IMG/VR virus record: IMGVR_UViG_3300035703_000010
Span: 1 to 64,000 of that record
Direction: 5' to 3' (one strand)
DNA: 64,000 bases
Of the stretch, positions 1,665 to 47,175 are shown piece by piece. Every line of letters starts with the position of its first letter. Position 1 is the stretch's first letter. A program made the position numbers and the translations under genes. The notes under the pieces were generated by a model that saw only the letters and a program-made list of their open reading frames with translations, had not been told where the DNA came from and searched no databases.

Positions 1665-4600
1665 TCATGCAACAATAAAATTGACTTTTAAAGTTCCGTT
1701 TGTTGAATTAGTATTGTGAGCATTACAAATTCTAATATTGAAAGCTCCTGATGTAATAGAGTCTACCATTACATATGGATGACCATCTGTGCCTATTGTA
1801 CCTGAATAATCTCCAATTGTTGCGACGACGACTGATGAACTAGCGACTGCGCTGTTCGTTACGGTAAAGGAAGACGAGCTATTTGCGCTGATGGCCGTTG
1901 AAACTGTTGTGATAACACCTGATGATGAGTTTATCGTAACTCCAGTAGTAATCGATCCAGTTTGAGTTACAGTCGCTTGTCCAAGGTTGAAAAGTTTTCC
2001 TTGCGTTAAAGCTGTGTTCGCAGTTAGAGAAACTCCTCCGCTTCCAGCATTAAGTGTCAAAGACGAAGTGCTATTTGTAGATCCAAGAGTAACTGTCTGG
2101 GCGGCTGCGCCTGTGGCAATGCTTGTAGTTCTGGCTGAAGCGCTAGTACCAATGTTTATTTGACCTGTACCAGCGTTGATTGTGACGGCTGACGCACCAG
2201 TCGATGCTCCTATGGAAACAGCTGAAAGTCCTGTACCTGCTCCGATAGTGATCGTCTGTGTATTGGACGTATTGTTACCGCTGCTTCCAATGTTAATTGT
2301 GTTTGTAGCAGTTGATCGTCCGAACGTCATAGTTCCAGTAGCGTCAGCCGATCCAAATGTATACGTACCTGCCGTTGCGCAAGCTAGAGAAAAATTACCT
2401 GAACCTGTTAGGTTAAAACCGCCTGTTCCTGATCTTAGGATCGTAAAACCTGTGCTGGTCGATAAGCTTCCAATCGTAATATTGTTTCTTCCTGTAGTAG
2501 AGGCAATGTTGACTGTTTGTATAAGGGTACCGTTGTTACCAGCTGCGCCAATATTAATCGTGTTAGAAGATGTTGAACGTCCTAACGTTATCGTGCCTGT
2601 GCCTGTTTCTCCGCCGACAGTATATGTTGTCGATGTAGATCCGGTTAATAACATGTTACCGGTTCCTGCTTCAAGCATTAACGAAGAAGCTCCGAAAATA
2701 GAGCCTACTGTTACTGCCTGAATTGCATCAGCTGTACCTAAGTTAACTGCGCGCGACGAAGGAGTCGTTCCTATGTTTAGAATCGATGCACTTTGAAGAA
2801 GATTGAATGTCGAAGCCGTCGTGTTAAGATTACCGCCGTTTACGTTAACATCGCCAGTAAAAGAAGTTCCGCTGACGGTTGCAACAATAGAATCATTAAT
2901 AGCTAAAACAACTGAGCTATTTGCACCGCCGTCTGTAAGTGTTAATCCAGTTCCTGCGCCTAGAGTTCTTTCGTTAGTCAATGTAGAGTCAGAAGAAATT
3001 ACAACATAAGAAGCAGTCACTGGAGCTATTTCAGAAACGTGTGCTAATTCTCTTGGAACTCCTCCAATTAAGGAATTAGGACGACCAGTCGTCGTGTTCA
3101 TACCTAAATCTCCAGCAGAAAGAGGAGTTGAAGTCGCATTAAACCTAAACAAAGCTCCTGGTGCTGAGCCGCTGACGTTTATAATTCCTGCTCCACCTCT
3201 GATGAATCCTGCATCTTTTGCTTGACCTAACCCAGGTTGGAATCCGACGGTTGTAGATGGCGGGAATAAAAGATCAGCATTATGTTCTATTGTTGTTACA
3301 GAACCTCCTCTAGTCCAACGGTATACTGCTGTAGATGCTTGAATTAGTTCAGCAAAGTCGGTCGTGCCGATTCTAAATGACGGGCTGGTTCCTATATGTA
3401 GAGTTCGTACAGGAGTTGTTGTGTTTATCCCAAGTCTATTGTTGTCAGAATCCCAAACAAAAGCAGAATCTTGTTGAATTATTCCGTTAGCTTGATAAAG
3501 CACGCCGCTAAGAATTGTTAAGTTTGAAGCTCCTAAACTTCCTGTAATCCCAACGTTTCCCCTGAATTGAGTGCCGCTAACAGTGGCAACTATGTTATCG
3601 TTGATTGCTAGCGTAACATCACCTGAAGATCCTCCTCCTGTCAGACCGGTTCCAGCATTAACTGCAGTAATGTCGCCAACCGTTCCATCATTCGTGATTG
3701 TGATTGCACCAGAAGAGCCCGTGGTGATAGAGATACCACTTCCTGCAATGAGGTATGATGTTCCGTTAGTTAATTTTGTTAATGAACCGCTGAGACCTTG
3801 GGAGAACTTCGTTTGGCCGGAGACGGTGTTTGTTCCAGAAGAATTTCCTATGTTTAGTGCTGTCGATGCCGCGCCGGCGAAGTTGACAGTCGTTGAGTTC
3901 GTGTTGAAAACGTTTGCTGTCGTGTTTGAAGTGGAGATTAATCCAGAATCGCCGATCGAAACATCACCGATCGTGAGGATGTTTGTCGTTTTATTATAAG
4001 TAAATTCGGCGTCACCACCGAATGTAGATCCTCCATCGTTGAACTGAACGTATGTGTCTAATCCTCCCGGCGTCGTTGGAGATACACCACCACCTCCTGT
4101 AGAAGTTATGCTTCTAAAGAGACCGCCTTGAACAAACCTAGCCTGAGCTGTATCTGATAGATTGCTTGCATTACCTTTTACTAACAGCGAGGCGACGTAG
4201 ATCGCTCCATTTTGCGTGTTTTTTCCTTCAGTAAATGTTTCTGTTGGAATAGCAGCTTCAGCTAAGTCTAACGAATTGTACGTAGCGTTACCGTAATAAA
4301 CATAGAAAGCTCTATTTGCAGAATTCGGGAACCAATAGACTCTCTGTATCGTAAACTGTCCTGCCGTGACGCTTCCAAGCGTTCCGTTGTTGTTGTACTT
4401 TGTTGGATCGATTACGGTATAACCTGCTCCACCTACGCCGGAATCGATGATATCTGTAGAGCCACTGACATATTCTCTGTATATCTTTGAAACAGTGACA
4501 GCCGTGTCTGTCGTCGACATGACGTAGTTTGGATCGTCTGGATCGACGGTGTAATTTCTGCCTTCCGCATATGATTCACCGGCTGATTTTATTAACGATA

Positions 4601-5423
4601 ATGTAGACCCGCTAGCTGCTAGCACGTGACCAGAAATCTTTAAGGGTCCAAACGCGCGGACGAAATGGCTCGTTTGTTGCGGGACAGAGTATGCTGTAGA
4701 TGGAGTCGTGGCCGTACCGTTCGTGACGCTACCTGATTGGTGTAGCACCTGACCTATTTTGACGTAGTCTAAAAAGTCTCCATTCGTGAATGGCGTTGTC
4801 TGCTGAATAATTCCACCGTTCTGATTAATACCAACGTATGTGATCTGATGGGTCGCGACGTACGTCAACGATTGGCTAACGTAGGTGGGCCATTCGACAT
4901 ATTGCACTGTTGGATACGGATCTGAAATTAATGATGCATTCGGCGCGATGATAAGAGCCGAGCCTGAAGTGATTGAAAACGTTGTCGTACCGTTTTGTGT
5001 TGATAGAACCCCGCCGTGGAGAAGACCCGTCGACATTATCGATTCTAACCAACGAAGACGTGTCGTGTTCGTGTAACCAGTCCCTGGCTGGTATTGAGTG
5101 AAGTAGAGGTCGTTTGTGGATCCTGAGGTATAGATGTAAGAAGCCGACTGATTCGTTGGGATTCTAAGCGCCCCGACTGGTTTCATCTGGATGTATTCAG
5201 AGACGCCGAAGGCCCCAGAAGCGAATGTATCACCTTTGAAAACGATGGATGGGGTATCGGCCCCCGAAGCCGTTGAGCTACCAGAGACGAAGAAGGTGAC
5301 GGTAGGATTTGGAAAAGAAGGGAAGGATGAACCTGGCTGGTTCGCGAATATGACGCTACCTGTAATGCCAATTCTCGAAGAGTTACTAGCCGATCCAGAA
5401 ATATTATTCGCAATTAAAGCCAT
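1665..5423 (-). CDS. Long tail/head fibre protein (1252 aa), G/S/T-rich
   Basis: Beta-rich G/S/T/N composition, internal repeats, YVQFNDGG..FGG..FTYN motif typical of phage fibres, C-terminal TVTQ..SITTGVTIN..SFTVTN module; shares segments with the neighbouring fibres. Confidence 0.8.
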   Translation of the reverse strand: MALIANNISGSASNSSRIGITGSVIFANQPGSSFPSFPNPTVTFFVSGSSTASGADTPSIVFKGDTFASGAFGVSEYIQMKPVGALRIPTNQSASYIYTSGSTNDLYFTQYQPGTGYTNTTRLRWLESIMSTGLLHGGVLSTQNGTTTFSITSGSALIIAPNASLISDPYPTVQYVEWPTYVSQSLTYVATHQITYVGINQNGGIIQQTTPFTNGDFLDYVKIGQVLHQSGSVTNGTATTPSTAYSVPQQTSHFVRAFGPLKISGHVLAASGSTLSLIKSAGESYAEGRNYTVDPDDPNYVMSTTDTAVTVSKIYREYVSGSTDIIDSGVGGAGYTVIDPTKYNNNGTLGSVTAGQFTIQRVYWFPNSANRAFYVYYGNATYNSLDLAEAAIPTETFTEGKNTQNGAIYVASLLVKGNASNLSDTAQARFVQGGLFRSITSTGGGGVSPTTPGGLDTYVQFNDGGSTFGGDAEFTYNKTTNILTIGDVSIGDSGLISTSNTTANVFNTNSTTVNFAGAASTALNIGNSSGTNTVSGQTKFSQGLSGSLTKLTNGTSYLIAGSGISITTGSSGAITITNDGTVGDITAVNAGTGLTGGGSSGDVTLAINDNIVATVSGTQFRGNVGITGSLGASNLTILSGVLYQANGIIQQDSAFVWDSDNNRLGINTTTPVRTLHIGTSPSFRIGTTDFAELIQASTAVYRWTRGGSVTTIEHNADLLFPPSTTVGFQPGLGQAKDAGFIRGGAGIINVSGSAPGALFRFNATSTPLSAGDLGMNTTTGRPNSLIGGVPRELAHVSEIAPVTASYVVISSDSTLTNERTLGAGTGLTLTDGGANSSVVLAINDSIVATVSGTSFTGDVNVNGGNLNTTASTFNLLQSASILNIGTTPSSRAVNLGTADAIQAVTVGSIFGASSLMLEAGTGNMLLTGSTSTTYTVGGETGTGTITLGRSTSSNTINIGAAGNNGTLIQTVNIASTTGRNNITIGSLSTSTGFTILRSGTGGFNLTGSGNFSLACATAGTYTFGSADATGTMTFGRSTATNTINIGSSGNNTSNTQTITIGAGTGLSAVSIGASTGASAVTINAGTGQINIGTSASARTTSIATGAAAQTVTLGSTNSTSSLTLNAGSGGVSLTANTALTQGKLFNLGQATVTQTGSITTGVTINSSSGVITTVSTAISANSSSSFTVTNSAVASSSVVVATIGDYSGTIGTDGHPYVMVDSITSGAFNIRICNAHNTNSTNGTLKVNFIVA
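2026..2727 (-). repeat. Protein-level tandem repeats in the long fibre
   Basis: TGTITLGRSTSSNTINIG (2548-2600) vs TGTMTFGRSTATNTINIG (2287-2339); several xVT(V/I/L)GS..xSS(L/V)x(L/I)xAG(T/S)G units. Confidence 0.75.
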
Positions 5424-5466: not shown

Positions 5467-6822
5467 TCAGAACTTGAGCTGTGGATCCTCATCAAGGTGA
5501 GGAACAGCTTCAAGTAAGAACTTGTAACGTTTACCGGTCTTGTTGAAACGAATTGTCAGCATATCCTCTTCTTCGATGAGGGTATAGTCGCCACGGTCGT
5601 TTCTGAGGTGTAAGTCGCCTGTATACACGTTAGCCCAACGGTTCGTTGCAGAACCAAGGTTTTGAGCATTATCTCCAGAAGGTATAATATCAGAATTGAC
5701 TCTTGCTGTGAATGTAACAGTATCAGAAGTAGTATCACCAAGAGCAACAGATCCAGAAACCCCTAAATCAGCTGCAATCCATAAAGATGTATCACCGTTT
5801 GTCGTAAGAGAAGAATTTCTTAAAACTTTTCCTGTTGTATCATCGAACAATGCAACAGCGTATTGCGTAGACGATCCAGGTCCTGTAACATCTCCAATTA
5901 CTAAAGAGCTTATCGTAACTGCACCATTTGATGCAGATGAGATAGAAATTCCAGATCCCGCGATCATGTATGAAGTTCCATCCATCAAGCGAGTTAATGA
6001 TCCGCTAAATCCGAGGCTTGCAGAAACTATGTTTGCTTGAATGTCGTTTGTATGAAGGTTTGAATAAGATGATATTGCAAAGCTTCCTGTTGCTGATGAG
6101 GTAGTGGTTGCAAATGCAAATTCAGAATTTGTGTTATCCCACTTATTCATTACATTTGTGCCACCAGTCGTAAGGCCTCCAATCCACCCGCGATCTCCGT
6201 TTGTTTGCGCTATCGTACCTGAAGCGAATCCAAGACCAATCACTGAATCTTTGACTTCAAGATTCGTTGTGTTAACAGTAGCCATCGTACCATTAACCGT
6301 AAGATCACCTGTTACTGTTACATTTTTTGAAACAATAAGGTTGTTGTTTACAGTCGTTGTACCGGTACCAGCAGCAGATCCTATTATTAATGCAGTTGCA
6401 GATGAACCGATTGCAACGTTTGTTGCGTTAGCATTGAATAATGTAGCTGTTGCGGAAGTTGTAGTAATATCTCCACCGTTAACAGCGATGTCTCCGCTTG
6501 TCGTTATGTTTCCTGTTGAAAGCGTAATTGAAACTGTGCTTCCTATGGAAACACCAACCGTGCTAGCAGAAAAAGAATTAGTTCCAGTGCTTGGGTTCTT
6601 TACGAGAAGCGTGCCGGAATTTACAAGATCTCCTCCGAATACAGCCCTGTCGATTCCGGTGGCTGCTCCGGACGACGACGATCCTGAAACGAAGAACGTT
6701 ACGTCAGTTCCTGGTAACGATGGAAACAGTGAACTTGGACGGTTCGCTATAATTACTGATCCAGAAACTCCGATGACTGAATTCGATTGTGTACTACCTG
6801 ATATGTGACCGACTAATGCCAT
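5467..6822 (-). CDS. Fibre protein (451 aa) with C-terminal YTGDLHLRND domain
   Basis: N-terminus homologous to the 1252 aa fibre (MAL..ISGS..S.IG.(S/T)GSVI.AN.P.S.FPS.P...VTFFVSGSS); VTGDLTVNGT..TVNTTNLEVKD fibre motif; SD-like AGGAG upstream. Confidence 0.8.
   Translation of the reverse strand: MALVGHISGSTQSNSVIGVSGSVIIANRPSSLFPSLPGTDVTFFVSGSSSSGAATGIDRAVFGGDLVNSGTLLVKNPSTGTNSFSASTVGVSIGSTVSITLSTGNITTSGDIAVNGGDITTTSATATLFNANATNVAIGSSATALIIGSAAGTGTTTVNNNLIVSKNVTVTGDLTVNGTMATVNTTNLEVKDSVIGLGFASGTIAQTNGDRGWIGGLTTGGTNVMNKWDNTNSEFAFATTTSSATGSFAISSYSNLHTNDIQANIVSASLGFSGSLTRLMDGTSYMIAGSGISISSASNGAVTISSLVIGDVTGPGSSTQYAVALFDDTTGKVLRNSSLTTNGDTSLWIAADLGVSGSVALGDTTSDTVTFTARVNSDIIPSGDNAQNLGSATNRWANVYTGDLHLRNDRGDYTLIEEEDMLTIRFNKTGKRYKFLLEAVPHLDEDPQLKF
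5591..5625. repeat. 35-nt direct repeat, copy 1 (34/35 identical to 6979-7013)
   Basis: ccacggtcgtttctgagGtgtaagtcgcctgtata; encodes YTGDLHLRNDRG in the fibre C-terminus. Confidence 0.9.
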
Positions 6823-6875: not shown

Positions 6876-8480
6876 TCAAGATTCGCTATCGATCGGTTGC
6901 AACATCATTTTGTACTTTTTACCTGTTATATTATTGATAACACAGAGATAATCACGTTCCTCTACGATTGTCCAATCTCCACGGTCGTTTCTGAGATGTA
7001 AGTCGCCTGTATAAACATGACCCCATCTTTTTTCAGACGTTCCTAAAGTATAAGTTGTATCTTCATCTGGTATGATATTACCTTTCATACCAAAAGATCC
7101 AGTCAAAGACAAAAGGTTTGTAGAAGAATTAAAATTTAAATTCGCAGAAGCCCCAAAAGATCCTGCATTATTAAATTGTAACTCAGTATTGCTACCAGCT
7201 GGCGTTCCACCGCCGGTAGATGAAATTGTTACTTGACCGTTTGACGCCGATGATATTGTAACGTTTGTTCCAGCAACAAGATATGAAGTACCATCAGTTA
7301 ATCTAGTAAGAGAACCTGATAATCCAAGAGTTGCTGCAAAAGAACCTGTAACTTCAACGATTCCTCTTCCTATTGAGATTCCTTTATTTACGCGTACTAT
7401 ATCTCCACGCGTAGCATTGCTGGTTGAAGTCCCGTCACCAATGATGAACAATGATGTAGAATTATTTCTTAAATTGTATTGTCCAAAGACATTTTGTCCA
7501 GAACCTGAAGCTATTGTTCCTATACCTGCTGCTAGCGAATAAGTACCTACAGCTTCAGTAGAACTACCTTCAGCATGTGATGCAATTCCAGAAGCTGTTG
7601 TTGATGCGCCTTCAGCATGAGAATACCATCCAGAAGCAATCGTAAATTGACCTTCTGCATGTGAAGCAATTGCTGAAGCTGTTGTGGTAAGTCCTTCAGC
7701 ATGTGAGTAAATGCCAGAAGCCGTAGTATTTGCGCCTTCAGCATGCGCACCAGAAGCAGAAGCCGTAGTGCTAGATCCTTCTGCATGCGCGGCAGCACCA
7801 GAAGCCGTGGTAGTTTGGCCTTCAGCGTGTGAATACAACCCTGATGCGTTTACTAATAAACCTTGTCTTAAAGATCCACTTATGACAACATCGCCACCAA
7901 ATAATGAGCGCTTATCATCCACTCCGCTTCCGCTAATCGATCCTGAGATATAAAAGAATACGTTTGTTCCTTTATCTGATGGAGAATCAATCCCGGCTTC
8001 ATTACCAATGAATGCCGCAGATCCTGTTGTGAAAATGGATCCATTCGTAGTGCTGCTGAAAAAGTTATTGGTAGCTGCAGTAGAAGAGATTGTTACAGAA
8101 CCATTTGAAGAAGAAAATATCGATATGTTATTTCCAGCGATTAAATAACTTGTACCGTCTACTAATGTTGTAAGCGATCCTGAAAGTCCTAATGTATGCT
8201 TCGTAACTCCAGTAAATGTTGATCCGCTGATCGTTGCTACTTCACCATCATTTATGGACAACGTGTAATTTGAATTTGCGCCTCCATCAGTGGCTTTTAA
8301 TCCGATGCTCGGAATAAATCGTCTTTCATTGGATAGTGAAGACGTCAATGATAGAACTAGATACGATGCGTCAGGGTCGCCTCCTCCAGTTGTACCTCCA
8401 CCCCCACCACCAGATGCATAGACAGGTTGCTGCCTATAAAATGAATACGTTTTTCTTAACCTATTTTTATCTTCGACCAT
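6876..8480 (-). CDS. Fibre/adhesin protein (534 aa) with YadA-like head repeats
   Basis: 14-aa SHAEG repeats, two GLSGSLT.L.DGTSYL.AG modules, PAGSNTELQFNNAGSFG motif, C-terminal YTGDLHLRNDRGDW domain. Confidence 0.85.
   Translation of the reverse strand: MVEDKNRLRKTYSFYRQQPVYASGGGGGGTTGGGDPDASYLVLSLTSSLSNERRFIPSIGLKATDGGANSNYTLSINDGEVATISGSTFTGVTKHTLGLSGSLTTLVDGTSYLIAGNNISIFSSSNGSVTISSTAATNNFFSSTTNGSIFTTGSAAFIGNEAGIDSPSDKGTNVFFYISGSISGSGVDDKRSLFGGDVVISGSLRQGLLVNASGLYSHAEGQTTTASGAAAHAEGSSTTASASGAHAEGANTTASGIYSHAEGLTTTASAIASHAEGQFTIASGWYSHAEGASTTASGIASHAEGSSTEAVGTYSLAAGIGTIASGSGQNVFGQYNLRNNSTSLFIIGDGTSTSNATRGDIVRVNKGISIGRGIVEVTGSFAATLGLSGSLTRLTDGTSYLVAGTNVTISSASNGQVTISSTGGGTPAGSNTELQFNNAGSFGASANLNFNSSTNLLSLTGSFGMKGNIIPDEDTTYTLGTSEKRWGHVYTGDLHLRNDRGDWTIVEERDYLCVINNITGKKYKMMLQPIDSES
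6979..7013. repeat. 35-nt direct repeat, copy 2
   Basis: ccacggtcgtttctgagAtgtaagtcgcctgtata; one synonymous mismatch to 5591-5625. Confidence 0.9.
7494..7850 (-). repeat. Eight 14-aa YadA-head-like repeats (ASGxxSHAEGxxTT)
   Basis: Seven HAEG units plus one degenerate (SLAAG) at 42-nt period. Confidence 0.85.
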
Positions 8481-33454: not shown

Positions 33455-33486
33455 AGATTTTTATATAATCTAAAAAATGCTAAAGT

Positions 33487-35089: not shown

Positions 35090-35107
35090 TTATTTCTCCA
35101 AATAAAA

Positions 35108-35599
35108 TTATAAAATTTTGTACATACAAATTTGATCAAAAAATTTTTCATCTCTGTATAAAGAAGAAATTAATTTACCTTCTTCTATAAACCCAAGATT
35201 TTTATATACTCTTTGACCTATTAGATTGTATTCTGCTGTCGTTAAACTTACTCTATGAAGTCCGATCTCTTTACAATAATCTAACATTAACGACCACATG
35301 AATTTTGCATATCCTTTACCTCTAAAATTTTTATGAATATCTGCTCCTAATATGCAATTTCTATTAGTAAAATCTATATTGTAAAATTTAGTAAATCCTA
35401 CTCTTTCAGAATTTATTTCAAATATTTTTCTTTTTTGAGAATTATCTTTTGATATTTTTTCCCACCAAGATAAATGTTGATTTAAAGTTATAGGATTTGG
35501 ATTGGTTAAATTTTTTAAAACTTCTGGATCATTGTGTAATTCAACTAACCATTCATGGTCGCCATGATTAATCTCTCTTAATATCATGTTTTGTTGCAT
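35108..35599 (-). CDS. GNAT N-acetyltransferase, PseH/RimJ-like
   Basis: LREI...D...L..L.ND, FRGKGYA acetyl-CoA motif, N......Y..LGF..EG; adjacent to the aminotransferase. Confidence 0.88.
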   Translation of the reverse strand: MQQNMILREINHGDHEWLVELHNDPEVLKNLTNPNPITLNQHLSWWEKISKDNSQKRKIFEINSERVGFTKFYNIDFTNRNCILGADIHKNFRGKGYAKFMWSLMLDYCKEIGLHRVSLTTAEYNLIGQRVYKNLGFIEEGKLISSLYRDEKFFDQICMYKIL

Positions 35600-35602
35600 A
35601 TG

Positions 35603-36742: not shown

Positions 36743-36745
36743 TTT

Positions 36746-37768: not shown

Positions 37769-37800
37769 TTTTATATTGTATTTTTTTACAAAAACGTTGT

Positions 37801-38637: not shown

Positions 38638-39757
38638 CTTTTAGAAATTTTTCCCAAACTTCCCAGTAATAATCATTAAAAATTTTAAGATTCATTTCTT
38701 CCATCCCAAATTTTAAGCTCCTTTCATAACCTGGATCTTTTAAAATTTTTTCTATTGCTTCTGCAGCTTCATTTGGAGTTTCAACAATAACTGAGTTAAT
38801 TTTGTCTACTAAATAGTTTGTAGAATTAGATGAAAGAACATATTTTTTTGTTGTAATAATAGGAATTCCTGAGTTTAAACAATAATAAAAAACTCCGCCG
38901 CCCCAATCAGTTTGTTTGAAGTGTACTGCTGCTTTTAAATTTTTAGTAATTTTATAAGATTGCCTTGGAGAAATTGTCGAAAATTTACCAGTTACGCCAT
39001 TTTTTTCAGAAAATCTTATATCTGCGCCGGCTGACCGAATGTTTCCTCCAAAATTTTTTACTTCTTCAACGTTTTTTTCTTTTAAAATTAAATTCATTTT
39101 AACAAAAAACTTGTAGTCATCTGGTTGCCTGACTTCAAAATTATGATTAAATGATGCAAATTGTAATGAATCTACAACATTAAACTCGCTATCTATGTCT
39201 AACAATTTAGTTTCAAAATCTACGCAAAAAACATTAACGTTATTAACGTTCGTATGTTTAGATTCATAGTTAGCTGGAATAAACTTAGCTACGTTTTTTG
39301 GTCTGTGATTTCCAGGATCATGGTTCCATGCATTCATTGTTGATGAAACCCATTTTGCGTTTGGAAAATATTCGTTAGCTACCTTGAAGTAATGTAATAA
39401 ACTTTCTTCGCCTCCTCTTAAAGTATGAAAAATTTCTATTCCGGGATTTTTTTCATTTAAATCTATTATTTCGCAAGATATGTCTTCATCATATAAGCAA
39501 CATGATTTAAATGTTTTCAGAAAAAAATCTTCTCCAAAAAATGCATTGTTTTCCTGGAATGGATAAAGATCAAGATTTCTTTTGCTTTTATCAATTGAAG
39601 ATTTGCACAATAAGATAGGCCATGTAGCTATTTTTTCCCATTTAAGTCCTAAAGTGCCAGGTTTTGGTACAAAAACTTTATGGCCTAACTTTGAATAATG
39701 ATAGATCATAGATGTTAATCCACTTCTATCATCAGTTGGAAAAATAAAAATATTCAT
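38624..39757 (-). CDS. Putative glycosyltransferase (divergent GT-B)
   Basis: KLGHKVF; C-terminal AVHFK..DWGGG.FYY.L..GIPII...D..N..IVET..EAAEAI. Confidence 0.7.
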   Translation of the reverse strand: MNIFIFPTDDRSGLTSMIYHYSKLGHKVFVPKPGTLGLKWEKIATWPILLCKSSIDKSKRNLDLYPFQENNAFFGEDFFLKTFKSCCLYDEDISCEIIDLNEKNPGIEIFHTLRGGEESLLHYFKVANEYFPNAKWVSSTMNAWNHDPGNHRPKNVAKFIPANYESKHTNVNNVNVFCVDFETKLLDIDSEFNVVDSLQFASFNHNFEVRQPDDYKFFVKMNLILKEKNVEEVKNFGGNIRSAGADIRFSEKNGVTGKFSTISPRQSYKITKNLKAAVHFKQTDWGGGVFYYCLNSGIPIITTKKYVLSSNSTNYLVDKINSVIVETPNEAAEAIEKILKDPGYERSLKFGMEEMNLKIFNDYYWEVWEKFLKGVYE

Positions 39758-39775
39758 ATTATTTCTTTTATTAGA

Positions 39776-40687
39776 TTAAAAATCAAATTCTGGTCCTTCT
39801 AACAAAACCTTGCTTTGAGGATATTTTTTTTGATCTCCATTTTCAGTCTGATAAGTCCATCCAATAGGATTGCATACATCAACAAAACTTAAAGGAGCGA
39901 AAGAATCTTGTTTTTTATAATACTCTTCTGGAGAAATTTTTTCATAATATTCTCCAGAAGAAGAAGGAGCATCTAAATAATACCCATATCGTTTATTGCC
40001 TCGTATGAAAGCGTATCCTCCTCTTGGGTCGTTCCATACAGGGGCAAATAAAGGAACCCAACTGCAATAATTCAATTGCAAATTAGGCAATTTTGATTTT
40101 AAATGAGAATCGTACCAGTCTTCTGATCTACCCCAAAATTCTTGAGTTTGTGGCCAATCAACTGGATAATTTCCAAACTTTTCAAAAATTTCTTTTTTAA
40201 AGAAACCCATAGTCGGAAAGTGGTTATCTAACGGCAAATAGTATTTGTAGTTTTTATTTTTTATTACTAAATTTTTATTAAATTTATTTTGAATAGTGGA
40301 TCTTCTAACCGCGTTAACTTCCAGAGAAAGCATTTCTTTAGAAGAATAGAAATCTTCTACAACTTTTTCTAAAACTTCTTTATTGCCAATAAATTGTAAA
40401 TCATCTTGAAGAAACAAGATTACATCATGCTTTGCATTTTCTATGATAATGTTTTTTGCAATATATTCATCATTAACCCAATTTCTTTCTTCAGGACTTC
40501 TAGAAAATAGTTGATGAATAACCCCGCTTTTTTTCTGCTCTTCAAGATATTCTTTAAGACCATGTTCTATGCTACAATTGTCAACAGCAATAACTTGATG
40601 ATCATTAGAAATTTCTTTTATGCTATTAAAAAGAGATTTTGTGTATTTTAAACGATTAAACGTTGTTATTCCAATTGTTATGTTCAC
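39776..40687 (-). CDS. Glycosyltransferase family 2
   Basis: ITIGITTFNR, IAVDNCS, ILFLQDD. Confidence 0.88.
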   Translation of the reverse strand: MNITIGITTFNRLKYTKSLFNSIKEISNDHQVIAVDNCSIEHGLKEYLEEQKKSGVIHQLFSRSPEERNWVNDEYIAKNIIIENAKHDVILFLQDDLQFIGNKEVLEKVVEDFYSSKEMLSLEVNAVRRSTIQNKFNKNLVIKNKNYKYYLPLDNHFPTMGFFKKEIFEKFGNYPVDWPQTQEFWGRSEDWYDSHLKSKLPNLQLNYCSWVPLFAPVWNDPRGGYAFIRGNKRYGYYLDAPSSSGEYYEKISPEEYYKKQDSFAPLSFVDVCNPIGWTYQTENGDQKKYPQSKVLLEGPEFDF

Positions 40688-40696
40688 TTTTTAACC

Positions 40697-41584
40697 TCAG
40701 CTTAAAATAATCTTCCAAAACGATTCCATAGATTCTTTCCACTTTGGAGGAGTTTTAGAATTTTTTAAAAAATTTCTTTTTGATAATATCTGTTCAATTT
40801 CAAAGAAATTTTTATAAACATGTTGTTTACCTACAAATTCAACGGCGCCGCCTCCTTCAGCATGAACGTATGTTGGAAGTCCAACTGCAATTGATTCTAA
40901 AACGTGATTAGGTCCAGGATCATGTCTAGACGCGCTAACATAAACGTCATATTTACATAATTCATCAGCTAAAGCTTTTCCGTATAGCGGAGGTATCGTT
41001 TTTGAATTAGAAAAAGTTCCTCTATCTCTTCCTATATACGTGAATGATATTTTATCGTTTTTAGTACTTAAGTAATCTAAAAATTCGTAAACATCAAAAC
41101 CTTTTAAGTAGTTATTAGACCAATGATGAGTTACAATTTTTAAAACATCATCATTCTTTTCTTGATAATTTGTATTAAAAAAATCTTCATCAACTCCGTT
41201 ATATAAAACGGATTGATTTTTGCAAATCCACCCTTTGTTATTAAAGTAATTTTTCATCCAATTACTTACAAAAATAGTTTTTGTATTAATCGCGCTACAT
41301 TGTAATAACAATTGATCCATATGTTCTGTGTTTTTTCTTGCGTCACATTCATTAATCCTTTGAATGACGGGTATTTTTTTTCTTGATATAAATTTTGCAG
41401 CATCATTTATATCGAATGATTTATCTCTTCGAGGATCGACCAAAAAAATTAGATCAGTATCATCAGTTAACTTATCAGTTAATTCAACTCCATCTGGAAC
41501 AGATGAATAAACTGCTTTAACAAAATTATTGCCACCGCCGTACGGTCCAGAAATAGGAGCTCTATTAATTGCAATTTTAACCAT
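40697..41584 (-). CDS. Glycosyltransferase family 4-like
   Basis: GPYGGG, YNGVD, KG.D, DVYVSASRHDPGPNHVLES.AVGLP. Confidence 0.85.
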   Translation of the reverse strand: MVKIAINRAPISGPYGGGNNFVKAVYSSVPDGVELTDKLTDDTDLIFLVDPRRDKSFDINDAAKFISRKKIPVIQRINECDARKNTEHMDQLLLQCSAINTKTIFVSNWMKNYFNNKGWICKNQSVLYNGVDEDFFNTNYQEKNDDVLKIVTHHWSNNYLKGFDVYEFLDYLSTKNDKISFTYIGRDRGTFSNSKTIPPLYGKALADELCKYDVYVSASRHDPGPNHVLESIAVGLPTYVHAEGGGAVEFVGKQHVYKNFFEIEQILSKRNFLKNSKTPPKWKESMESFWKIILS

Positions 41585-41603
41585 TCATAAAATTTTATAA
41601 ATT

Positions 41604-42506
41604 TTATAATGATTGTATCAAAGTTCTATAAGGATCATATCCTTTAGGAAGTTTCCATTCTTCTACGTCTGGTATGCTAGGAATTGCAAAAGTTACATCG
41701 TCTGAAATTGACGATTGAGGTAAAATTTGAGAAGCAATTCCTATGTTTCTAGAAACCACTGGAATGTTTAAAAGACCGCATTCAATAAGCGATTGTGGAC
41801 CTCCTTCGCATCTAGCAGTTACAGGATATAAATCTAATGTTTGATATAGCTCATTAATCGTTTTTTGATCTGGTCTATCGAAATATGTAAATGAAATATT
41901 CGACGCAGTTAATCGATTGATAATATACTGCCTTCTCCATCCTGCTAAAACTACATGTAAATTTTGTTTTTCTTTTGACCATTTTTCTATTGCGTCAGCT
42001 AGAAGATCTGGTCCTTTTTCTAGTTTTGGAGAAATTAAGTCTTTACCTTCTGTATCTCTTTGAAATGATCCAATTAAAAATCCATTTTCAGGTAAATTAT
42101 GTTTTTTTCTTAGACTTTGTTTTTCTTCTGTTTGATACCAAATATTTTGATTTGCCCAATACTTTAATAAGTGAATAGGCTTAGAAGTAAACTTTCTAAT
42201 AAAGTCTGACGTTTGTTCATTGTAAACATGATATGCTGTAGTAATTTTATCTCTTAACAAAAAATTATGAACGTCAATGTCTTTAAACTTTTCTGGAACT
42301 ATATGATGTACTGTCGTTAGAACTTTTTTATTTTTTAATAGTCCTTTAAAAAACATTTGTTCCCAACACCAATCAGCAAGTAGCCAAACAACATCAGCGT
42401 CTTTGGGATTTAACACGCTGATATCTTTGTTGTCTTCATTCCACTCTTTTACAAAACGGTCAACAATCCAGTCTTCTGATGGCGGGAGGACATACACTTT
42501 ATTCAT
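41604..42506 (-). CDS. Glycosyltransferase family 4-like
   Basis: IGSFQRD, KGPD, DLYPVTARCEGGPQSLIEC....PVVS. Confidence 0.85.
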   Translation of the reverse strand: MNKVYVLPPSEDWIVDRFVKEWNEDNKDISVLNPKDADVVWLLADWCWEQMFFKGLLKNKKVLTTVHHIVPEKFKDIDVHNFLLRDKITTAYHVYNEQTSDFIRKFTSKPIHLLKYWANQNIWYQTEEKQSLRKKHNLPENGFLIGSFQRDTEGKDLISPKLEKGPDLLADAIEKWSKEKQNLHVVLAGWRRQYIINRLTASNISFTYFDRPDQKTINELYQTLDLYPVTARCEGGPQSLIECGLLNIPVVSRNIGIASQILPQSSISDDVTFAIPSIPDVEEWKLPKGYDPYRTLIQSL

Positions 42507-43438
42507 GAATGTAAAACGCTTTCTAAAAACGAAAGATAATCATTTAATGTTCGTTGCATTGAAACATCAAAACAGTGAGATAAATCATTCTTATGGGGTA
42601 AACGATTCTTTATTTGTGCTACGTCAATTTTAGGAGGATTATCGTAGTCAGTTAGTTCAAAGTTATATTCTTTTTCTTCTTTTAAAATAACTCCATACCC
42701 CTGAACTAGTTCTTTTGTTCCTCCATGTTCAGAACAAATAACTGGTGTTCCTTGTGATAAGGATTCTACTACAGTATTTGGACAATGGTCTAACCATGCA
42801 AGATGTAACATCCAATTAGCTGCAGAAAATATTTCTAAACAAACTTCGTGGGGTTGAGATCCTGCATAAAAAACGTGAGGATCAGCGACTTTTATTGGAT
42901 TAGATCCTAAAACTATAAGAGCAGCTGAAGAATAAAAATTTCTTAAATGTTTATATAACTCTATGTTTTGTAACAAACGTTTTTGAGGATGCCAATTTGC
43001 AGAACATACGAATAACATTTCGTATTGTTGTCTAATTTGTTCTAATACAGGTATTTGAAATTTTTTAATTTCTGGTGCATTAATACCGTTTCGAATTATT
43101 TCGAATTTTTTTGGATATCCCCACCACTTCGTAGTCATGCCTTTATCAAATGCTGACTGCCATATTACAGCATCAGCTGATTGATAAAGCTTTTTTATAG
43201 AAGAGTTTTTTGTTTCAAACTCTTCAGGAGAAAACCAAATTCCATCAAGCCTTTGAACAACTTTTTTTGCTAATGGTCTGCCAGTAGGTTCAATAAAAAC
43301 TATTGAAATTTCAGCTTTTCTACCATCATATAATTCAACTTCATGACCAGATTCTATTAACGCCATAGCTAATCTCTTTCCAAAAGAATTTGGACCAGAG
43401 TTTGAGCTCATATTAACGTTGTCAAGATGTATTTTCAT
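42503..43438 (-). CDS. Glycosyltransferase family 4-like
   Basis: SGP.SF..RL, IRNGI, KRL, LHLAWLDHCPNTVVESLSQGTPVICSEHGGTKELV. Confidence 0.88.
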   Translation of the reverse strand: MKIHLDNVNMSSNSGPNSFGKRLAMALIESGHEVELYDGRKAEISIVFIEPTGRPLAKKVVQRLDGIWFSPEEFETKNSSIKKLYQSADAVIWQSAFDKGMTTKWWGYPKKFEIIRNGINAPEIKKFQIPVLEQIRQQYEMLFVCSANWHPQKRLLQNIELYKHLRNFYSSAALIVLGSNPIKVADPHVFYAGSQPHEVCLEIFSAANWMLHLAWLDHCPNTVVESLSQGTPVICSEHGGTKELVQGYGVILKEEKEYNFELTDYDNPPKIDVAQIKNRLPHKNDLSHCFDVSMQRTLNDYLSFLESVLHS

Positions 43439-43800
43439 GATCTCTTTTTTACTTCAGCAATAAAAGGAATTGCAAATGGAGTCTTATTAAACATCATTGC
43501 CATCAAAGCAATTTCTTTTGTTTCTATGTTAGAAAGACTAGCTCTTTGCGTAAATATATTTGGATCTAACTCTTGATTTCCATTTATAGTTACAGCATCA
43601 TAATACATCTGTGCTATAAAATTTACAGATTCATTAGTCAAAGGAACTGAAGATTCTTTAATGATTTCAGATAAAGAAAAGAAAATATCTTGATAAATTT
43701 CTGAACAAATTTGTGGTGTTAGTTTTTCACCTTTTCTTTTAAATAAGCGTTCAGATAAAAGCTTAGAAATAGATTCATGAAGAGCTTCGCCTTGCATCAT
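43435..43800 (-). CDS. Hypothetical protein within glycosylation island
   Basis: 121 aa helical ORF with ATGA overlaps on both sides. Confidence 0.7.
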   Translation of the reverse strand: MMQGEALHESISKLLSERLFKRKGEKLTPQICSEIYQDIFFSLSEIIKESSVPLTNESVNFIAQMYYDAVTINGNQELDPNIFTQRASLSNIETKEIALMAMMFNKTPFAIPFIAEVKKRS

Positions 43801-44531
43801 TTTACATACCCTCTGTTCCTTAAAAAAACAGCTTCATCCCTTTGAAATATAGCATCATTTGTTTGATATGTTTCAGGAACATCATTAATTGTGTAATGAT
43901 ACATTACTCTAGGTAAGAAAAATCTTTTTTTAGAATTATGAAGAGCTGGTAAATAAATTGCTTGATCTCCTGCTCTTCTGATATAACTTCCATCTTCTCC
44001 TCTATAGTTTTCATCTTTTACTTCATTTAGTAATTTTTTTCTAAATGTTTTTAAATGACTAGAAACCCAAGCATGTTTATACGGATCAACTTCTTGTGAC
44101 ATTGGACAACTTATGTTTTTGTCACTAAATCCCCAACGATGAGCTGTCCATAAAGTATCACATGAAGTTTGAACATAAGCAGAATTGATTATCATCAAAC
44201 AATCAGAATCTGTTAGCCAGTCATCTGCATCAATTCTACAGACGATGTCTTCATCATCACACATTGATAACCCTTGTAATACATTTGCAACTTCCCATTT
44301 TTTTTCAGAGTTCCAAATATTAATGATTCTATTTTGATAAGTTTTTCCTAAGATATTTTTAAAATCATCACAAATTTGAAGAGATTTTTTTGAATGATTT
44401 TCTGAAGACACATCATCGATTAAAATAATTTTCCAATTATCATATGATTGACCGCAAATAGAATGAAGCATTCTGGGTAATGTTTCAGACGCATTATACA
44501 TTGGAGAAATAAACACAAATCTATTATTCAT
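43797..44531 (-). CDS. Glycosyltransferase family 2
   Basis: FISPMYNA, SI..QSY.NW.IILIDD.S, RIDADDWL. Confidence 0.9.
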   Translation of the reverse strand: MNNRFVFISPMYNASETLPRMLHSICGQSYDNWKIILIDDVSSENHSKKSLQICDDFKNILGKTYQNRIINIWNSEKKWEVANVLQGLSMCDDEDIVCRIDADDWLTDSDCLMIINSAYVQTSCDTLWTAHRWGFSDKNISCPMSQEVDPYKHAWVSSHLKTFRKKLLNEVKDENYRGEDGSYIRRAGDQAIYLPALHNSKKRFFLPRVMYHYTINDVPETYQTNDAIFQRDEAVFLRNRGYVK

Positions 44532-45238
44532 TTCATCATCTCATTTGCTTTTTTATAAGATTCATGCGTACCAGCATCTATCCAACCAGTTTCAACATTT
44601 GTGAAAGTTCCAATTCTGTTTTTTACCATGAAAGAGTTTATGTCGCTTACTTCATATTCTCCTCTTGCTGATGGTTTTAAACTTTTAATAACATTAAAAG
44701 CTTCTGGAGTGTAGCAATATACTCCGACTATAGCATCATTGCAAGTTGGATGTTTAGGTTTTTCAACTACATCGGCTATTTTTCCATTTTGATAAACTGG
44801 AATTCCGAATCTTTCTGGATCATGTACTTTTTTAGTAAACAACGCATAGTCATCGTTTGAATCGCTAAATTTTTTTATAGAGTTTGTTATTTTTGAGTAG
44901 TTTTCAAAAATATTGTCTCCTAAGATTGTTACAAATTTTTGATTTCCGACGAATCCTTCGCATAATTGAATTGCTGAAGCAATTCCGTTAGCTACTTCTT
45001 GTATGCAGTAATAAATTGAGCATCCATATTCAGTTCCGGAACCAAGCAACATGGCGAATTGTCCAATGTGCTCTTGTCTAGTAATAATGCAAATTTCCTT
45101 GATACCAGATTCTACTAAAAGATTTATAGAATGAATTATCATAGGCTTTTCGCCTACTGGAAGTAGACATTTACTGGTAAATTTTGTTAAAGGCTGAAGT
45201 CGACTGCTAATCCCTCCAGTTAGAATAATTCCTTTCAT
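44528..45238 (-). CDS. Sugar-1-phosphate nucleotidyltransferase, short RmlA/SpsI-like
   Basis: MKGIIL.GG..SRL.PLT....K.LLPV..KPMI, GIA.A, LGDNIF, PERFG, EKP, PS.RGE.E, W.DAGT.ES...AN. Confidence 0.9.
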   Translation of the reverse strand: MKGIILTGGISSRLQPLTKFTSKCLLPVGEKPMIIHSINLLVESGIKEICIITRQEHIGQFAMLLGSGTEYGCSIYYCIQEVANGIASAIQLCEGFVGNQKFVTILGDNIFENYSKITNSIKKFSDSNDDYALFTKKVHDPERFGIPVYQNGKIADVVEKPKHPTCNDAIVGVYCYTPEAFNVIKSLKPSARGEYEVSDINSFMVKNRIGTFTNVETGWIDAGTHESYKKANEMMK

Positions 45239-47175
45239 TTTTTATTCCTGTTTAACATGATTTTTGGTTGCGCTTTTTCAACTGTTAAATGAGGAGTTGT
45301 AGTTTTGCCATCCCATTTTTGATGCCAAATCCATCCGCCTAATTTTTCTTTAAGCTCTTTAGCTCTTTTTTCAATCATTTCGTCAGTAACTTCTTGCCAA
45401 GGATGATCAAACATCATATTTGAAGCTGAAGTATCTTCGTATTTTTTACCAGATAATGATTCCCAATGTTTTGTCCAATAATCTTTATATAATTTGATCT
45501 TTCTTTCAAGATTATACCAGCTATAATGAAAAACGCCTGGTAAATTATTAACGACATTATTAAACCAAGCATTATAGTCTTTTAATGCTTTTTGATTTCC
45601 TAATAATGCAGATCTTCTTATTTGATCTGCTTCTGCAGTATAGAATGTAACATGATTGATTCTATTTCCAGTTTTAGAATCAATCATGTCGCAACCATCT
45701 GTACCTTCAGCTGCATACAAATCTCCGTTAGAGTCATATCTTCTAAGTTCAACAGGAATGCCATGAGTTATGTTTTGCTTATTTCTACTTAACCTCCACT
45801 TCCAAGGCATGATATCAAGTCGAACCTTTTCAGGACCACCCCAATACTCAATGACTGGTAATGATATTAAATCAACATTTGCTGGAAACTTTGAACACAA
45901 ATCAATTATTTTTTCTGCATCTGACTCATGAACAATTTCATCTGAATCCATTTGCCAACAGAAAGTTGATTTACACATGGATCTTGCTTCTGCTTTTTGC
46001 ATTCCATCAAACACTGCAAATCGTGGATGGTTCCAATCTCTATGAATTTGTTTTATGACAATCTTGTCATTTTTTTCAGATAATTCTTTTAGTTTTTCCC
46101 ATGTGCCGTCAGAAGAACCTCCATCTACAACACATACTTCTTCGCAAAATTGAAGCATAGATTCGATGCATTCTACAAAAGGATAGTCTTGTTTAATGCA
46201 ATTATATACAGTTGTGTATCCACTTATAGATGGCTTATAATCCATCATCTTCTTTATTCCATTCCAAAAAATTGTTGGAGCTGTAAAAAGATATTCTTCA
46301 ATTTCTTTGATGTTTTCTGTATTAAACCATTCTTCATCTTTGTGTTGAACGTTATCATTAAGATGAAGCTTACATCCTAACAATTTTGCTTCTATAACCA
46401 TTCTTGGACACGTATCTTTTCCTTCAGGAAGATATACAAATCCTTCTGCTTTCGAAAACCTATTTAGCATTTCATCATATGAAATATTCCAAACTACGTC
46501 ATGCTCTTTTTTATTTTCTTGGCACCAAAGTTTCGCATTTTTAGCTCCTTTTACCCAAGAATCTGATCCAAGTACTATCCAAGATTTTCTAGGCGTAGAA
46601 GATGAATTAGATTGTTCTCTAAGAAGCTTGATCATTCCTAGAGTATTTTTTGAAAATACGCTGGATAAAACAATGTTCGTTTTTTCTAATAAAAATGGGA
46701 ATAAATTTAGATACCACTCTTTTTGAGCTTCTGACATCCACCATAGTCCTCTAGAACCATAGTAGAAAGCTGATATCAATTTTCCATTAAGTTGTTCTTG
46801 ACAATCGCAATCTTTTCCTGATGCTGATTTATGTTTTTCTGGGGATCTATATCGACAGTATTTATAGTCGTATTCTAATATGCTATATTTTAAATTTCCT
46901 ATGATGGTAGGAATTAATTCTGGATTCAATTGAGCAAAATTTCCAAATATCCAGAATTTGTCGACGCCTTGTTTAAGAAGATCTAAACTTAAATCTTTTG
47001 ATAAAATTTTTGTGTACGGAAGAGGACATTCATCTATTAAAGCTTGAGTTGTTAATTCTGCTCCTCCGACATAATGCTCTGCAAAAAGATCAGCAACAAA
47101 AATTATCTTTGCATCTTGTGGGATAGATAAATCTATCATTTTTGTGCTAAAAATACTTTCATTAAAGTTATTCAA
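45235..47175 (-). CDS. Bifunctional glycosyltransferase (GT-B + GT2 fusion)
   Basis: N-half: GGAELT, FVYLP.GKDTCPRMVIEAKLLGC; C-half: ISGYTTVYN, VVDGGSSDGT, QMDSDE. TTG start with GAGGG SD. Confidence 0.88.
   Translation of the reverse strand: MNNFNESIFSTKMIDLSIPQDAKIIFVADLFAEHYVGGAELTTQALIDECPLPYTKILSKDLSLDLLKQGVDKFWIFGNFAQLNPELIPTIIGNLKYSILEYDYKYCRYRSPEKHKSASGKDCDCQEQLNGKLISAFYYGSRGLWWMSEAQKEWYLNLFPFLLEKTNIVLSSVFSKNTLGMIKLLREQSNSSSTPRKSWIVLGSDSWVKGAKNAKLWCQENKKEHDVVWNISYDEMLNRFSKAEGFVYLPEGKDTCPRMVIEAKLLGCKLHLNDNVQHKDEEWFNTENIKEIEEYLFTAPTIFWNGIKKMMDYKPSISGYTTVYNCIKQDYPFVECIESMLQFCEEVCVVDGGSSDGTWEKLKELSEKNDKIVIKQIHRDWNHPRFAVFDGMQKAEARSMCKSTFCWQMDSDEIVHESDAEKIIDLCSKFPANVDLISLPVIEYWGGPEKVRLDIMPWKWRLSRNKQNITHGIPVELRRYDSNGDLYAAEGTDGCDMIDSKTGNRINHVTFYTAEADQIRRSALLGNQKALKDYNAWFNNVVNNLPGVFHYSWYNLERKIKLYKDYWTKHWESLSGKKYEDTSASNMMFDHPWQEVTDEMIEKRAKELKEKLGGWIWHQKWDGKTTTPHLTVEKAQPKIMLNRNKK

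Follow-up and report, generated by a model that had tools for sequence, protein, structure and literature searches.

Do the Ser/Thr-Gly-Ser tripeptides ([ST]GS) that recur in the distal tail proteins of an uncultured aquatic phage mark a site for sugar attachment, or are they simply a way of building these proteins? The locus lies in a 64,000-nucleotide stretch of DNA (positions 1 to 64,000 of IMG/VR record IMGVR_UViG_3300035703_000010, hereafter the window), in which a preliminary description had counted the motif by eye, had noted its absence from the gp6-, gp25- and gp5-like proteins, and had proposed that a complete virion-glycosylation system with about 12 cytoplasmic glycosyltransferases (GTs) writes O-glycans onto it. 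The observation holds up, and every count given in that description is right. Its interpretation is only partly supported, in that the motif may be a sugar-attachment site but nothing in the present analysis proves it, and both "complete system" and "about 12 GTs" are overstated.

The excess over chance was first measured against shuffled sequences. The 1160 aa protein (15822..19304, minus strand, as are all features below) contains 13 sites against 1.76 expected, and 0 of 2000 shuffles reach 13. The 514 aa protein that directly follows the gp6-like protein (19307..20851) contains 8 against 1.09, the 957 aa distal tail protein (12022..14895) 6 against 1.66, and the 490 aa distal tail protein (10553..12025) 4 against 0.77. 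In the three fibres, the 1252 aa protein (1665..5423) has 15 sites against 5.7 (P=0.0005 by shuffling), the 451 aa protein (5467..6822) 6 against 1.95, and the 534 aa protein (6876..8480) 10 against 3.06. The enrichment is therefore 5-7 fold in the four non-fibre proteins and 2.6-3.3 fold in the fibres. The N-terminal region of the 1252 aa fibre, with 3 sites, is shared with the 451 aa fibre, and the central region of the 534 aa fibre resembles the head repeats of trimeric autotransporter adhesins (BpaC repeats, PDB 7o23, E=9.5e-6). In contrast, there are no sites in the gp6-like baseplate wedge protein (20853..22688), the gp25-like baseplate protein (22690..23154), or the 544, 948, 828 and 1364 aa proteins, and only single sites occur in the PseB-like enzyme, the helicase, PTH2 and the 328 aa protein. 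The gp25-like protein scores 27.9 bits against a threshold of 27.2 for Pfam GPW_gp25, whereas the gp6-like protein scores only 15.9 against 21.1 for Baseplate_J but aligns over its full length, at about 30% identity, with the annotated baseplate wedge protein of Flavobacterium phage immuto.

Of all 8000 tripeptides, TGS (14 vs 2.0) and SGS (17 vs 3.3) rank first and second in the four outer baseplate proteins, with P about 1e-8 against 1e-4 for the next. The excess survives domain-wise shuffling (mean 1.9, maximum 10, observed 13) and a first-order Markov expectation (62 observed vs 33.6). Codons at the motif are diverse, so the signal resides in the protein and is not a DNA word. At family level TGS is enriched 5.7x and SGS 4.5x, whereas NGS is 1.0x, AGS 1.3x and other xGS about 1. 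As such, the motif requires a hydroxyl residue followed by Gly and Ser, and [ND]GS is not enriched although Asx turns are the commoner structural solution.

Is this a property of one phage or of a lineage? The enrichment holds in 27-76 IMG/VR orthologues per family: 612 observed vs 115 expected in 73 orthologues of the 1160 aa protein, 443 vs 69 in 75 orthologues of the 514 aa protein, 267 vs 74 in the 957 aa family and 69 vs 15.6 in the 490 aa family. The 301 aa protein between the LamG and 957 aa proteins (14895..15800) has 1 site in the window, but its family is enriched (80 vs 21.3). For 76 orthologues of the gp6-like protein the figure is 4 vs 36.4. Three cultured distant relatives are also enriched, namely immuto (about 60 vs 12.7), Microcystis phage Mel-JY01 (45 vs 5.9) and Rhodothermus phage RM378 (a cluster with 21 vs 3.3), as are 35 further Mel-JY01-like IMG/VR loci (mostly 4-7x). 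T4, P2 and Flavobacterium phage FCL-2 lack it. The hosts span Bacteroidota, Cyanobacteria and Rhodothermus, which points to a phage-encoded agent. The motif-bearing beta-sandwich parts are not detectably homologous between the window and immuto or Mel-JY01, with only the helical cores aligning, and the excess is therefore not just inherited sites.

Structural models help to place the sites. The 1160 aa protein is predicted (AlphaFold2 pLDDT 75.5) to contain two LamG/pentraxin-like jelly rolls and a helical core, and none of its 13 sites lies in the helical parts. This is consistent with its Pfam Laminin_G_3 score (44.8 bits vs a threshold of 27.6) and with Foldseek matches to LamG, pentraxin, CBM and PAPP-A LamG domains (probability 1.0 for the LamG, pentraxin and PAPP-A matches). 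The 514 aa protein is predicted (pLDDT 87.4) to be an array of CBM/Ig-like beta-sandwiches, with CBM 8wab as the top Foldseek hit. In the models, 19 of 21 sites abut or start a strand or lie in 2-5 residue hairpins. The sites in the models are thus strand caps or tight turns, an outcome that the preliminary description had listed as refuting glycosylation, although turns alone do not explain why T4, P2 and FCL-2 lack the excess. Among orthologues of the 1160 aa protein, site G683 is 100% SGS, and sites 923, 714 and 289 are 74-91% conserved.

Which enzymes could act on such a motif? Upstream of the baseplate genes lie two adjacent GT4 enzymes, a 386-like one (29191..30351) and a 414-like partner (30355..31599), scoring 38.7 and 59.8 bits against a cut-off of 26.4 for Pfam Glycos_transf_1 (PF00534). 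Beside them lies a PD-(D/E)XK nuclease (31638..32456; PDDEXK_1, 61.6 bits) that travels with the pair in nearly all lineages. The remaining sugar island (32489..47175) varies between relatives and, by Pfam and NCBIfam searches, encodes a short NDP-sugar dehydrogenase, a PseH/PseC/PseB-like trio, three GT2, three more GT4 (300 aa, 37.5 bits; 311 aa, 36.0 bits; and a 295 aa ORF that scores only 17.1), an RmlA-like nucleotidyltransferase and five ORFs to which these and further searches gave no assignment. Pfam thus recognises eight GTs, one of them weakly, and no island ORF has a predicted membrane segment. The pseudaminic acid pathway is incomplete: the PseB-like, PseC-like and PseH-like proteins score 270.6 vs 407.75, 243.7 vs 423.5 and 61.8 vs 93.1 at equivalog level, and no PseG, PseI or PseF was found. 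The likely product is a UDP-2,4-diacetamido-trideoxyhexose, not a nonulosonic acid.

Every enriched lineage carries the adjacent, soluble GT4 pair. The EX7E motif and basic phosphate-binding residues are at least 95% conserved or invariant, as E285...E293 and R201/K202 in the 414 family (n=27) and E272...E280 and R183/K184 in the 386 family (n=39). The exception is RM378, whose diverged 386-like copy has a degenerate second Glu, yet RM378 is still enriched. The 386-like gene is syntenic in nearly all relatives of the window, where the pair sits directly upstream of the baseplate genes on the same strand and the 386-like stop codon overlaps the start of the next baseplate-side ORF. In immuto, Mel-JY01 and RM378, by comparison, the pair lies among replication and nucleotide-metabolism genes beside a nuclease, not among tail genes, which does not support a role on tail proteins. 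One natural contrast is nested among these phages. By gp6, LR756508 is closer to Mel-JY01 (44%) than the window is; it has the 414-like GT4, also among replication genes, but no 386-like one was detected by synteny, hhalign or tblastn of the whole record. Its orthologous distal proteins carry only 5-6 sites against about 2.2-2.5 expected, a much weaker enrichment.

Taken together, our leading but tentative reading, which we hold to be less likely than not, is that [ST]GS is a lineage-specific acceptor motif on exposed, strand-capping turns of baseplate-distal and fibre proteins. In this view the pair of soluble retaining GT4 enzymes, above all the 386-like one, would O-glycosylate a Ser or Thr of the motif in the cytoplasm, on folded or folding beta-sandwich and beta-helical domains, before or during tail assembly, while the variable remainder of the island would supply the donors (a UDP-2,4-diacetamido-trideoxyhexose-type sugar, hexuronate, dTDP/UDP-hexose) and extend the glycan. 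What the analysis establishes is the enrichment, its specificity, its distribution across lineages, the position of the sites in the models, and the solubility and, RM378's partner aside, intact catalytic motif of the pair. That any site is glycosylated, that the pair acts on these proteins, that it recognises the motif, and that a glycan would serve shielding, stability or adhesion are all inferred. No glycan has been observed, and the association rests on one deep lineage plus a single loss, so that phylogenetic independence is minimal. Only the GT4 pair within the island is conserved, about half of the sites are positionally conserved strand caps or tight turns, and rare private sites occur at about the chance rate (113 vs 117), giving no sign of ongoing excess gain. 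Likewise, the motif is not reliably depleted in non-target proteins, and no paper found in our literature searches describes an [ST]GS sequon.

A purely structural motif is nearly as likely. Hydrophobic-[ST]-G-S-hydrophobic may be the habitual way in which this lineage caps beta-strands and makes tight turns in the beta-sandwich and beta-helical modules that its tail genes exchange, with no modification taking place and with the GT island serving another acceptor, either host envelope polysaccharide or phage DNA. The placement of the modelled sites is consistent with this view, as are the 5-6 columns per protein that are conserved in at least 50% of orthologues and the chance rate of private sites. 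In addition, the fibre repeat GLSGSLTxLxDGTSYLI recurs as a module, and sites 306 and 922 of the 1160 aa protein occupy the canonical LamG xGxiDEvRiy position, an ordinary structural role. The company of the GT4 pair, a PD-(D/E)XK nuclease and, outside the window family, replication genes, including a thymidylate-synthase-family gene in LR756508, also fits another acceptor. However, turn preferences are universal, yet tail proteins of similar fold classes in T4, P2 and FCL-2 show no excess, and Asn/Asp-Gly-Ser is not enriched. The excess also appears in several different folds and in domains without detectable homology between sub-lineages, and LR756508 orthologues do without the motif. No hydroxymethylase gene was seen in the window, and amino-trideoxyhexose pathways are not known for DNA glycosylation.

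It is less likely, though not excluded, that the motif is read by some other lineage-specific factor or functions directly, whether as a site of another O-modification (phosphorylation, acylation), a recognition element for a tail chaperone, or a small main-chain nest that binds anionic groups of host surface glycans in lectin-like domains. The hydroxyl specificity, lineage specificity and restriction to distal, receptor-facing proteins fit any trans-acting reader, and the carrier domains are lectin/CBM-like. In contrast, no kinase or acyltransferase was seen travelling with the lineage in the regions examined, the one correlated loss involves a GT4, and the sites are scattered over different faces and folds rather than one binding pocket. 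A chance or compositional artefact of Ser/Thr/Gly-rich fibre sequence, suggested by fibres that are 12-15% Ser and 12-14% Gly and show the weakest enrichment, is refuted by the shuffles of the two globular proteins (0 of 2000 for each), the domain-wise and Markov controls, and replication in hundreds of orthologues and three cultured phages.

If the motif is a sequon, which is possible but not favored over the alternatives combined, an abundant aquatic lineage of T4-like phages (at least 600 gp6 matches and at least 262 matches to the 386-like GT4 in IMG/VR), with cultured members, would coat its baseplate periphery and fibres with O-glycans, and [ST]GS would be the first defined sequon for phage virion glycosylation. 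Such glycosylation would then be no actinophage curiosity but a core trait of a very common group of aquatic myoviruses, with a site rule simple enough to predict glycosites from sequence. This would affect how their receptor-binding proteins are modelled, how host range and environmental decay are understood, and how recombinant tail proteins should be produced. If it is not a sequon, the finding is still a clean, lineage-specific tripeptide signature that marks distal tail proteins in unannotated metagenomic phage contigs. It also leaves a conserved nuclease-GT4-GT4 module of unknown function that is widespread in marine contigs, many of them binned into MAGs of unrelated organisms.

A lipid-linked, PglL-type en bloc O-glycosylation system, as in the general system of Bacteroidota, relies on a membrane oligosaccharyltransferase, a flippase and an initiating transferase; it is not supported, because no island ORF has a membrane segment and the D[ST][AILVMT] sequon is not enriched in any target protein (z between -0.9 and 1.1). 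Nor is cytoplasmic N-glycosylation of the HMW1C/NGT type, since N[^P][ST] reaches at most z=2.6, in one fibre, and is about 0 elsewhere, and no GT41 hit was found. Phage DNA glycosylation (T4 alpha/beta-glucosyltransferases; diverse DNA-glycan GTs, Pyle et al. 2024 as cited in PMC12619734) likewise involves soluble GTs near nucleases and nucleotide-metabolism genes, as the GT4 genes are in immuto, Mel-JY01, RM378 and LR756508, but it needs a hydroxymethylated base and would not explain the protein motif. The bacterial autotransporter heptosyltransferases TibC/AAH, acting on TibA/AIDA-I, offer a precedent for cytoplasmic, Ser-specific hyperglycosylation at many sites in loops of a beta-structure, with Ser followed by Gly or Ala (PMC4358343). 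The resemblance is limited to this acceptor logic, as that enzyme is a dodecameric GT-B heptosyltransferase with an iron finger that uses ADP-heptose, whereas only GT4 and GT2 families were detected here. GtfA/GtfB is a pair of adjacent GT4-type proteins that starts cytoplasmic O-glycosylation of Ser in serine-rich repeat adhesins; GtfB is non-catalytic and the acceptor is a disordered Ser-rich repeat, whereas in the window family both partners keep EX7E and the candidate sites lie in folded domains. Chloroviruses and giant viruses glycosylate capsids or fibrils with virus-encoded soluble GT clusters and non-canonical acceptor motifs, and chlorovirus B736L (3oy2) is the best PDB sequence match of the 386-like GT4 and one of the better matches of the 414-like GT4. 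Those are eukaryotic viruses with mostly N-linked glycans on the major capsid protein, however, and the similarity is at generic GT4 level (E 4e-7 and 3e-3). In mycobacteriophage virion glycosylation (Freeman et al. 2023, as cited in PMC12619734), phage-encoded soluble GTs are thought to decorate virion proteins in the cytoplasm. Distant GT4 relatives of the pair lie inside the structural operons of actinophages, with GT4-MTase-GT2 between the capsid and neck genes of phiPsal1, although TJE1 and phiPsal1 show no [ST]GS excess. In the mycobacteriophages the acceptors are reported to be the C-terminal tails of capsid and tail-tube subunits of siphoviruses, whereas the candidates here are internal turns of baseplate and fibre proteins of a T4-like myovirus lineage, with a defined tripeptide.

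The window is part of the 204,651 bp IMG/VR contig IMGVR_UViG_3300035703_000010. One minus-strand block runs from a sugar and glycosyltransferase island (47175 down to 29191) through baseplate genes to three fibre genes (8480 down to 1665). No cultured phage is close at the DNA level, while the gp6-like protein is about 30% identical to those of Flavobacterium phage immuto, Microcystis phage Mel-JY01 and the uncultured 484 kb phage LR756508. The fibre-gene end of the window (1-8000) has 42–45% G+C against 27–36% elsewhere, which may reflect Gly/Ser/Thr/Ala-rich coding or recent acquisition of the fibre genes. At 8608-10061 (+) three plus-strand genes, encoding a NADAR domain protein, a PTH2 peptidyl-tRNA hydrolase and a 159 aa ORF, interrupt the minus-strand tail block and look like an inserted counter-defence or translation-rescue cassette. 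The plus-strand block encodes a PIN-PhoH fusion protein and a ClpP protease (53514-54878 (+) and 50209-50814 (+)).

The observation of a recurring [ST]GS motif in the distal tail proteins holds: the counts in the preliminary description are all exact, as is its expectation of 1–2 sites for the LamG protein, for which we obtain 1.76. In the four non-fibre proteins, TGS (14 observed vs 2.0 expected) and SGS (17 vs 3.3) are the two most enriched of all tripeptides, with P of about 1e-8, four orders of magnitude beyond the next. The excess survives shuffling within structural domains (mean 1.9, maximum 10 in 5000 shuffles, observed 13) as well as a first-order Markov expectation that already absorbs the SG and GS dipeptides (62 vs 33.6), and in the LamG and 514 aa proteins 18–22% of all glycines sit in the motif. 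A DNA-level word is ruled out because 41 different 9-mers encode the 62 sites, such that the signal is in the protein and not in the DNA. In the 534 aa fibre (6876-8480 (-)), residues 211–345 contain YadA/BpaC-like trimeric autotransporter head repeats (HAEG...TTASG), which explains the excess of HAE and AEG tripeptides.

To ask whether the motif is a family trait, ORFs were called from the first start codon by our own script in 114 IMG/VR loci, assigned to window proteins by BLAST, and scored over non-identical orthologues of 35–85% identity. Against composition-based expectations, the LamG 1160 aa family has 612 sites vs 115 expected in 73 orthologues (5.3x), the 514 aa family 443 vs 69 in 75 (6.4x), the 957 aa family 267 vs 74 in 43 (3.6x), the 490 aa family 69 vs 15.6 in 26 (4.4x), and the 301 aa family 80 vs 21 in 55 (3.8x), whereas the gp6-like family has 4 vs 36.4 in 76 (0.11x); these pooled counts are not phylogenetically independent. 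In the LamG alignment, six columns carry the motif in at least half of the sequences, with G683 being SGS in all 74 and sites 923, 714 and 289 being 74–91% conserved, and at these columns Ser and Thr interchange at positions 1 and 3. Of 625 LamG sites, 354 lie in those six columns, 158 in clade-specific columns and 113 in rare columns, the last figure matching the chance expectation of 117. The excess is therefore made of retained sites, without a measurable surplus of new ones. The low count in gp6 raised the possibility that the motif is avoided in non-target proteins, and SGS is 0.25x in pooled non-targets, but the deficit is not significant in the window alone (4 vs 8.06, P=0.10) and is not seen in RM378 or in marine GT-island loci, so we make no claim of avoidance.

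Pooled over the target families, position 1 of the motif is T (5.7x) or S (4.5x), the next best being I at 1.7x, with N at 1.0x; position 2 is G, with SAS at 2.3x; and position 3 is S, with SGT at 2.7x and TGT at 1.4x. The residue before the motif is usually hydrophobic. Neither [ND]GS nor [ST]G[ND] is enriched in the window proteins, nor are the known sequons, namely the Bacteroidota O-glycosylation sequon D[ST][AILVMT] and N-x-[ST]. Our literature search likewise found no description of an [ST]GS sequon, and a link to the 'moraphages' (PMC12619734) is no more than possible.

With alignments of 69 and 60 sequences, AlphaFold2 gave a confident model of the 514 aa protein (pLDDT 87.4, pTM 0.85) and a usable model of the 1160 aa protein (pLDDT 75.5). 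The 514 aa protein is predicted to be an array of CBM/Ig-like sandwiches, while the 1160 aa protein is predicted to have two LamG/pentraxin-like jelly rolls, at about 120–345 and 604–980, set in a helical core; no site falls in the helical parts. Mapping of the sites by eye on the DSSP strings placed 19 of 21 at a strand end, at the opening of a strand or in short hairpins, and two within strands. Sites 306 and 922 occupy the same canonical LamG position in the two jelly rolls. The sites are thus plausible surface turns, as judged from the DSSP strings of the models alone.

The excess is not a general property of tail proteins. In T4, 16 baseplate, whisker, neck, terminase and fibre proteins have 7 sites vs about 8.9 expected, the structural proteins of P2 have 6 vs 2.3 with none in fibre H, and those of the Flavobacterium myovirus FCL-2 have 3 vs 2.8. 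In contrast, the proteins after gp6 have about 60 vs 12.7 in immuto, whose host is Flavobacterium sp. LMO8, and 45 vs 5.9 in Mel-JY01, and six large ORFs at 64.8–76 kb of Rhodothermus phage RM378, one of which matches a PHROG virion structural protein, have 21 vs 3.3. Thirty-five further IMG/VR loci of the Mel-JY01 gp6 clade, which has at least 600 matches in the collection, are mostly 4–7x enriched downstream of gp6. Between the window and immuto or Mel-JY01, only the helical cores of the 514 and 1160 homologues align, not the sandwich domains that carry the sites.

In the sugar island, Pfam recognises five GT4 (one below threshold) and three GT2, where the preliminary description had counted about 12 cytoplasmic glycosyltransferases. 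Pfam and NCBIfam also recognise an RmlA-like nucleotidyltransferase, an NDP-sugar dehydrogenase, and a PseB/PseC/PseH-like trio whose members all score below the equivalog cut-offs. The dehydrogenase (32489-33454 (-)) is only 321 aa and matches profile positions 2–295 of 413; it lacks the C-terminal domain, the last third, and may be inactive or may work with a partner. Five ORFs (300, 242, 278, 377 and 121 aa) returned nothing in Pfam, PHROGs, NCBIfam or PDB sequence searches. No island ORF has a membrane segment, and no flippase, polymerase, initiating transferase or oligosaccharyltransferase is present. The only membrane-like segment between the GT pair and the baseplate genes is the strongly hydrophobic N-terminus (residues 1–22) of a 101 aa ORF at 28889-29194 (-), whose start overlaps the stop of the 386 aa GT4.

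Only three genes are conserved across lineages, a PD-(D/E)XK nuclease and the two GT4s of 414 and 386 aa, and both GT4 families keep EX7E and the basic pair. In the window family the three sit directly upstream of the baseplate genes, with stop and start codons overlapping, whereas in immuto and Mel-JY01 the same trio lies tens of kilobases from the baseplate among replication genes, followed by a different set of sugar enzymes. In RM378 the arrangement is exonuclease, GT4, then a diverged 386-like protein (hhalign probability 97.5%) whose second catalytic Glu is degenerate. The trio, often with a 646-like GT2 and a PseB-like gene, is also common in marine contigs binned into MAGs of unrelated organisms (loci L130-L166), labelled Pelagibacter, Thaumarchaeota, Methanobacteriota, Pacearchaeota, Halobacteriovorax and others, which are probably phage contigs mis-binned into MAGs. 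One relative, the 461 kb contig IMGVR_UViG_3300005974_000004 (L110), keeps strong enrichment (10 vs 1.6 and 7 vs 0.75) but has no GT4 pair within 10 kb of its baseplate genes. The best 80 IMG/VR matches to gp6 and the best 80 to the GT4 pair did not overlap, and lists limited in this way do not bear on presence or absence of the pair in L110 or in two low-enrichment contigs (L252, 1.8x, and L264, 2.3x).

The one informative contrast is LR756508. Its gp6 is closer to Mel-JY01 (44%) and immuto (38.5%) than the window's is (30.6%), so it nests inside the enriched group. It has the nuclease and the 414-like GT4, but the next ORF is unrelated to the 386 family (hhalign probability 0.13), and neither the window's nor Mel-JY01's 386-like protein finds anything in the whole 484 kb record at E up to 0.1. 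At this locus (297432-314706), a cytidylyltransferase and a GT29 sialyltransferase-like gene lie downstream of that ORF, next to the single GT4, and a DNA methylase and a thymidylate-synthase-family gene lie upstream. Its orthologous distal proteins carry far fewer sites: the 420 aa protein has 0 against 4 in the Mel-JY01 orthologue and 3 in that of immuto, the 1400 aa protein 2 against 11 and 5, and the 304 aa protein 0 against 5 and 5. This is a single event and could be coincidence.

Taken together, a lineage-specific excess that needs a hydroxyl residue, spans several folds and occurs in phages of three host phyla argues for a phage-encoded reader of the motif, and the GT4 pair is the only candidate seen to co-vary with it. 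The interpretation in the preliminary description, that [ST]GS is an O-glycosylation sequon written by the island, is partly supported. What our analysis establishes is the excess, its specificity, its distribution across lineages and the position of the sites in the models, together with a soluble GT4 pair that preserves its catalytic motif in the window family; that the pair acts on these proteins and recognises the motif is inferred, and nothing shows a sugar on any protein. Against this interpretation, every site has an ordinary structural place, the pair's neighbours outside the window family suggest DNA metabolism, and there is no robust avoidance of the motif elsewhere. Virion O-glycosylation remains a tentative reading, the leading one but short of even odds. 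Almost as possible is a purely structural motif with the island serving another acceptor. Another reader or function is unlikely, and generic low complexity of the fibres is rejected by the shuffles, the domain-wise shuffles, the Markov control and T4, P2 and FCL-2.

The best PDB sequence matches of the two GT4s are generic GT4s, including chlorovirus B736L. A GtfB-like inactive partner is rejected for the window family, where EX7E is kept. The link does not extend to all related GT4s, as the distant GT4 carriers TJE1 and phiPsal1 show no enrichment. Cytoplasmic Ser-specific glycosylation of Ser-Gly/Ala turns in a beta-structure does, however, have a precedent in TibC/AIDA.
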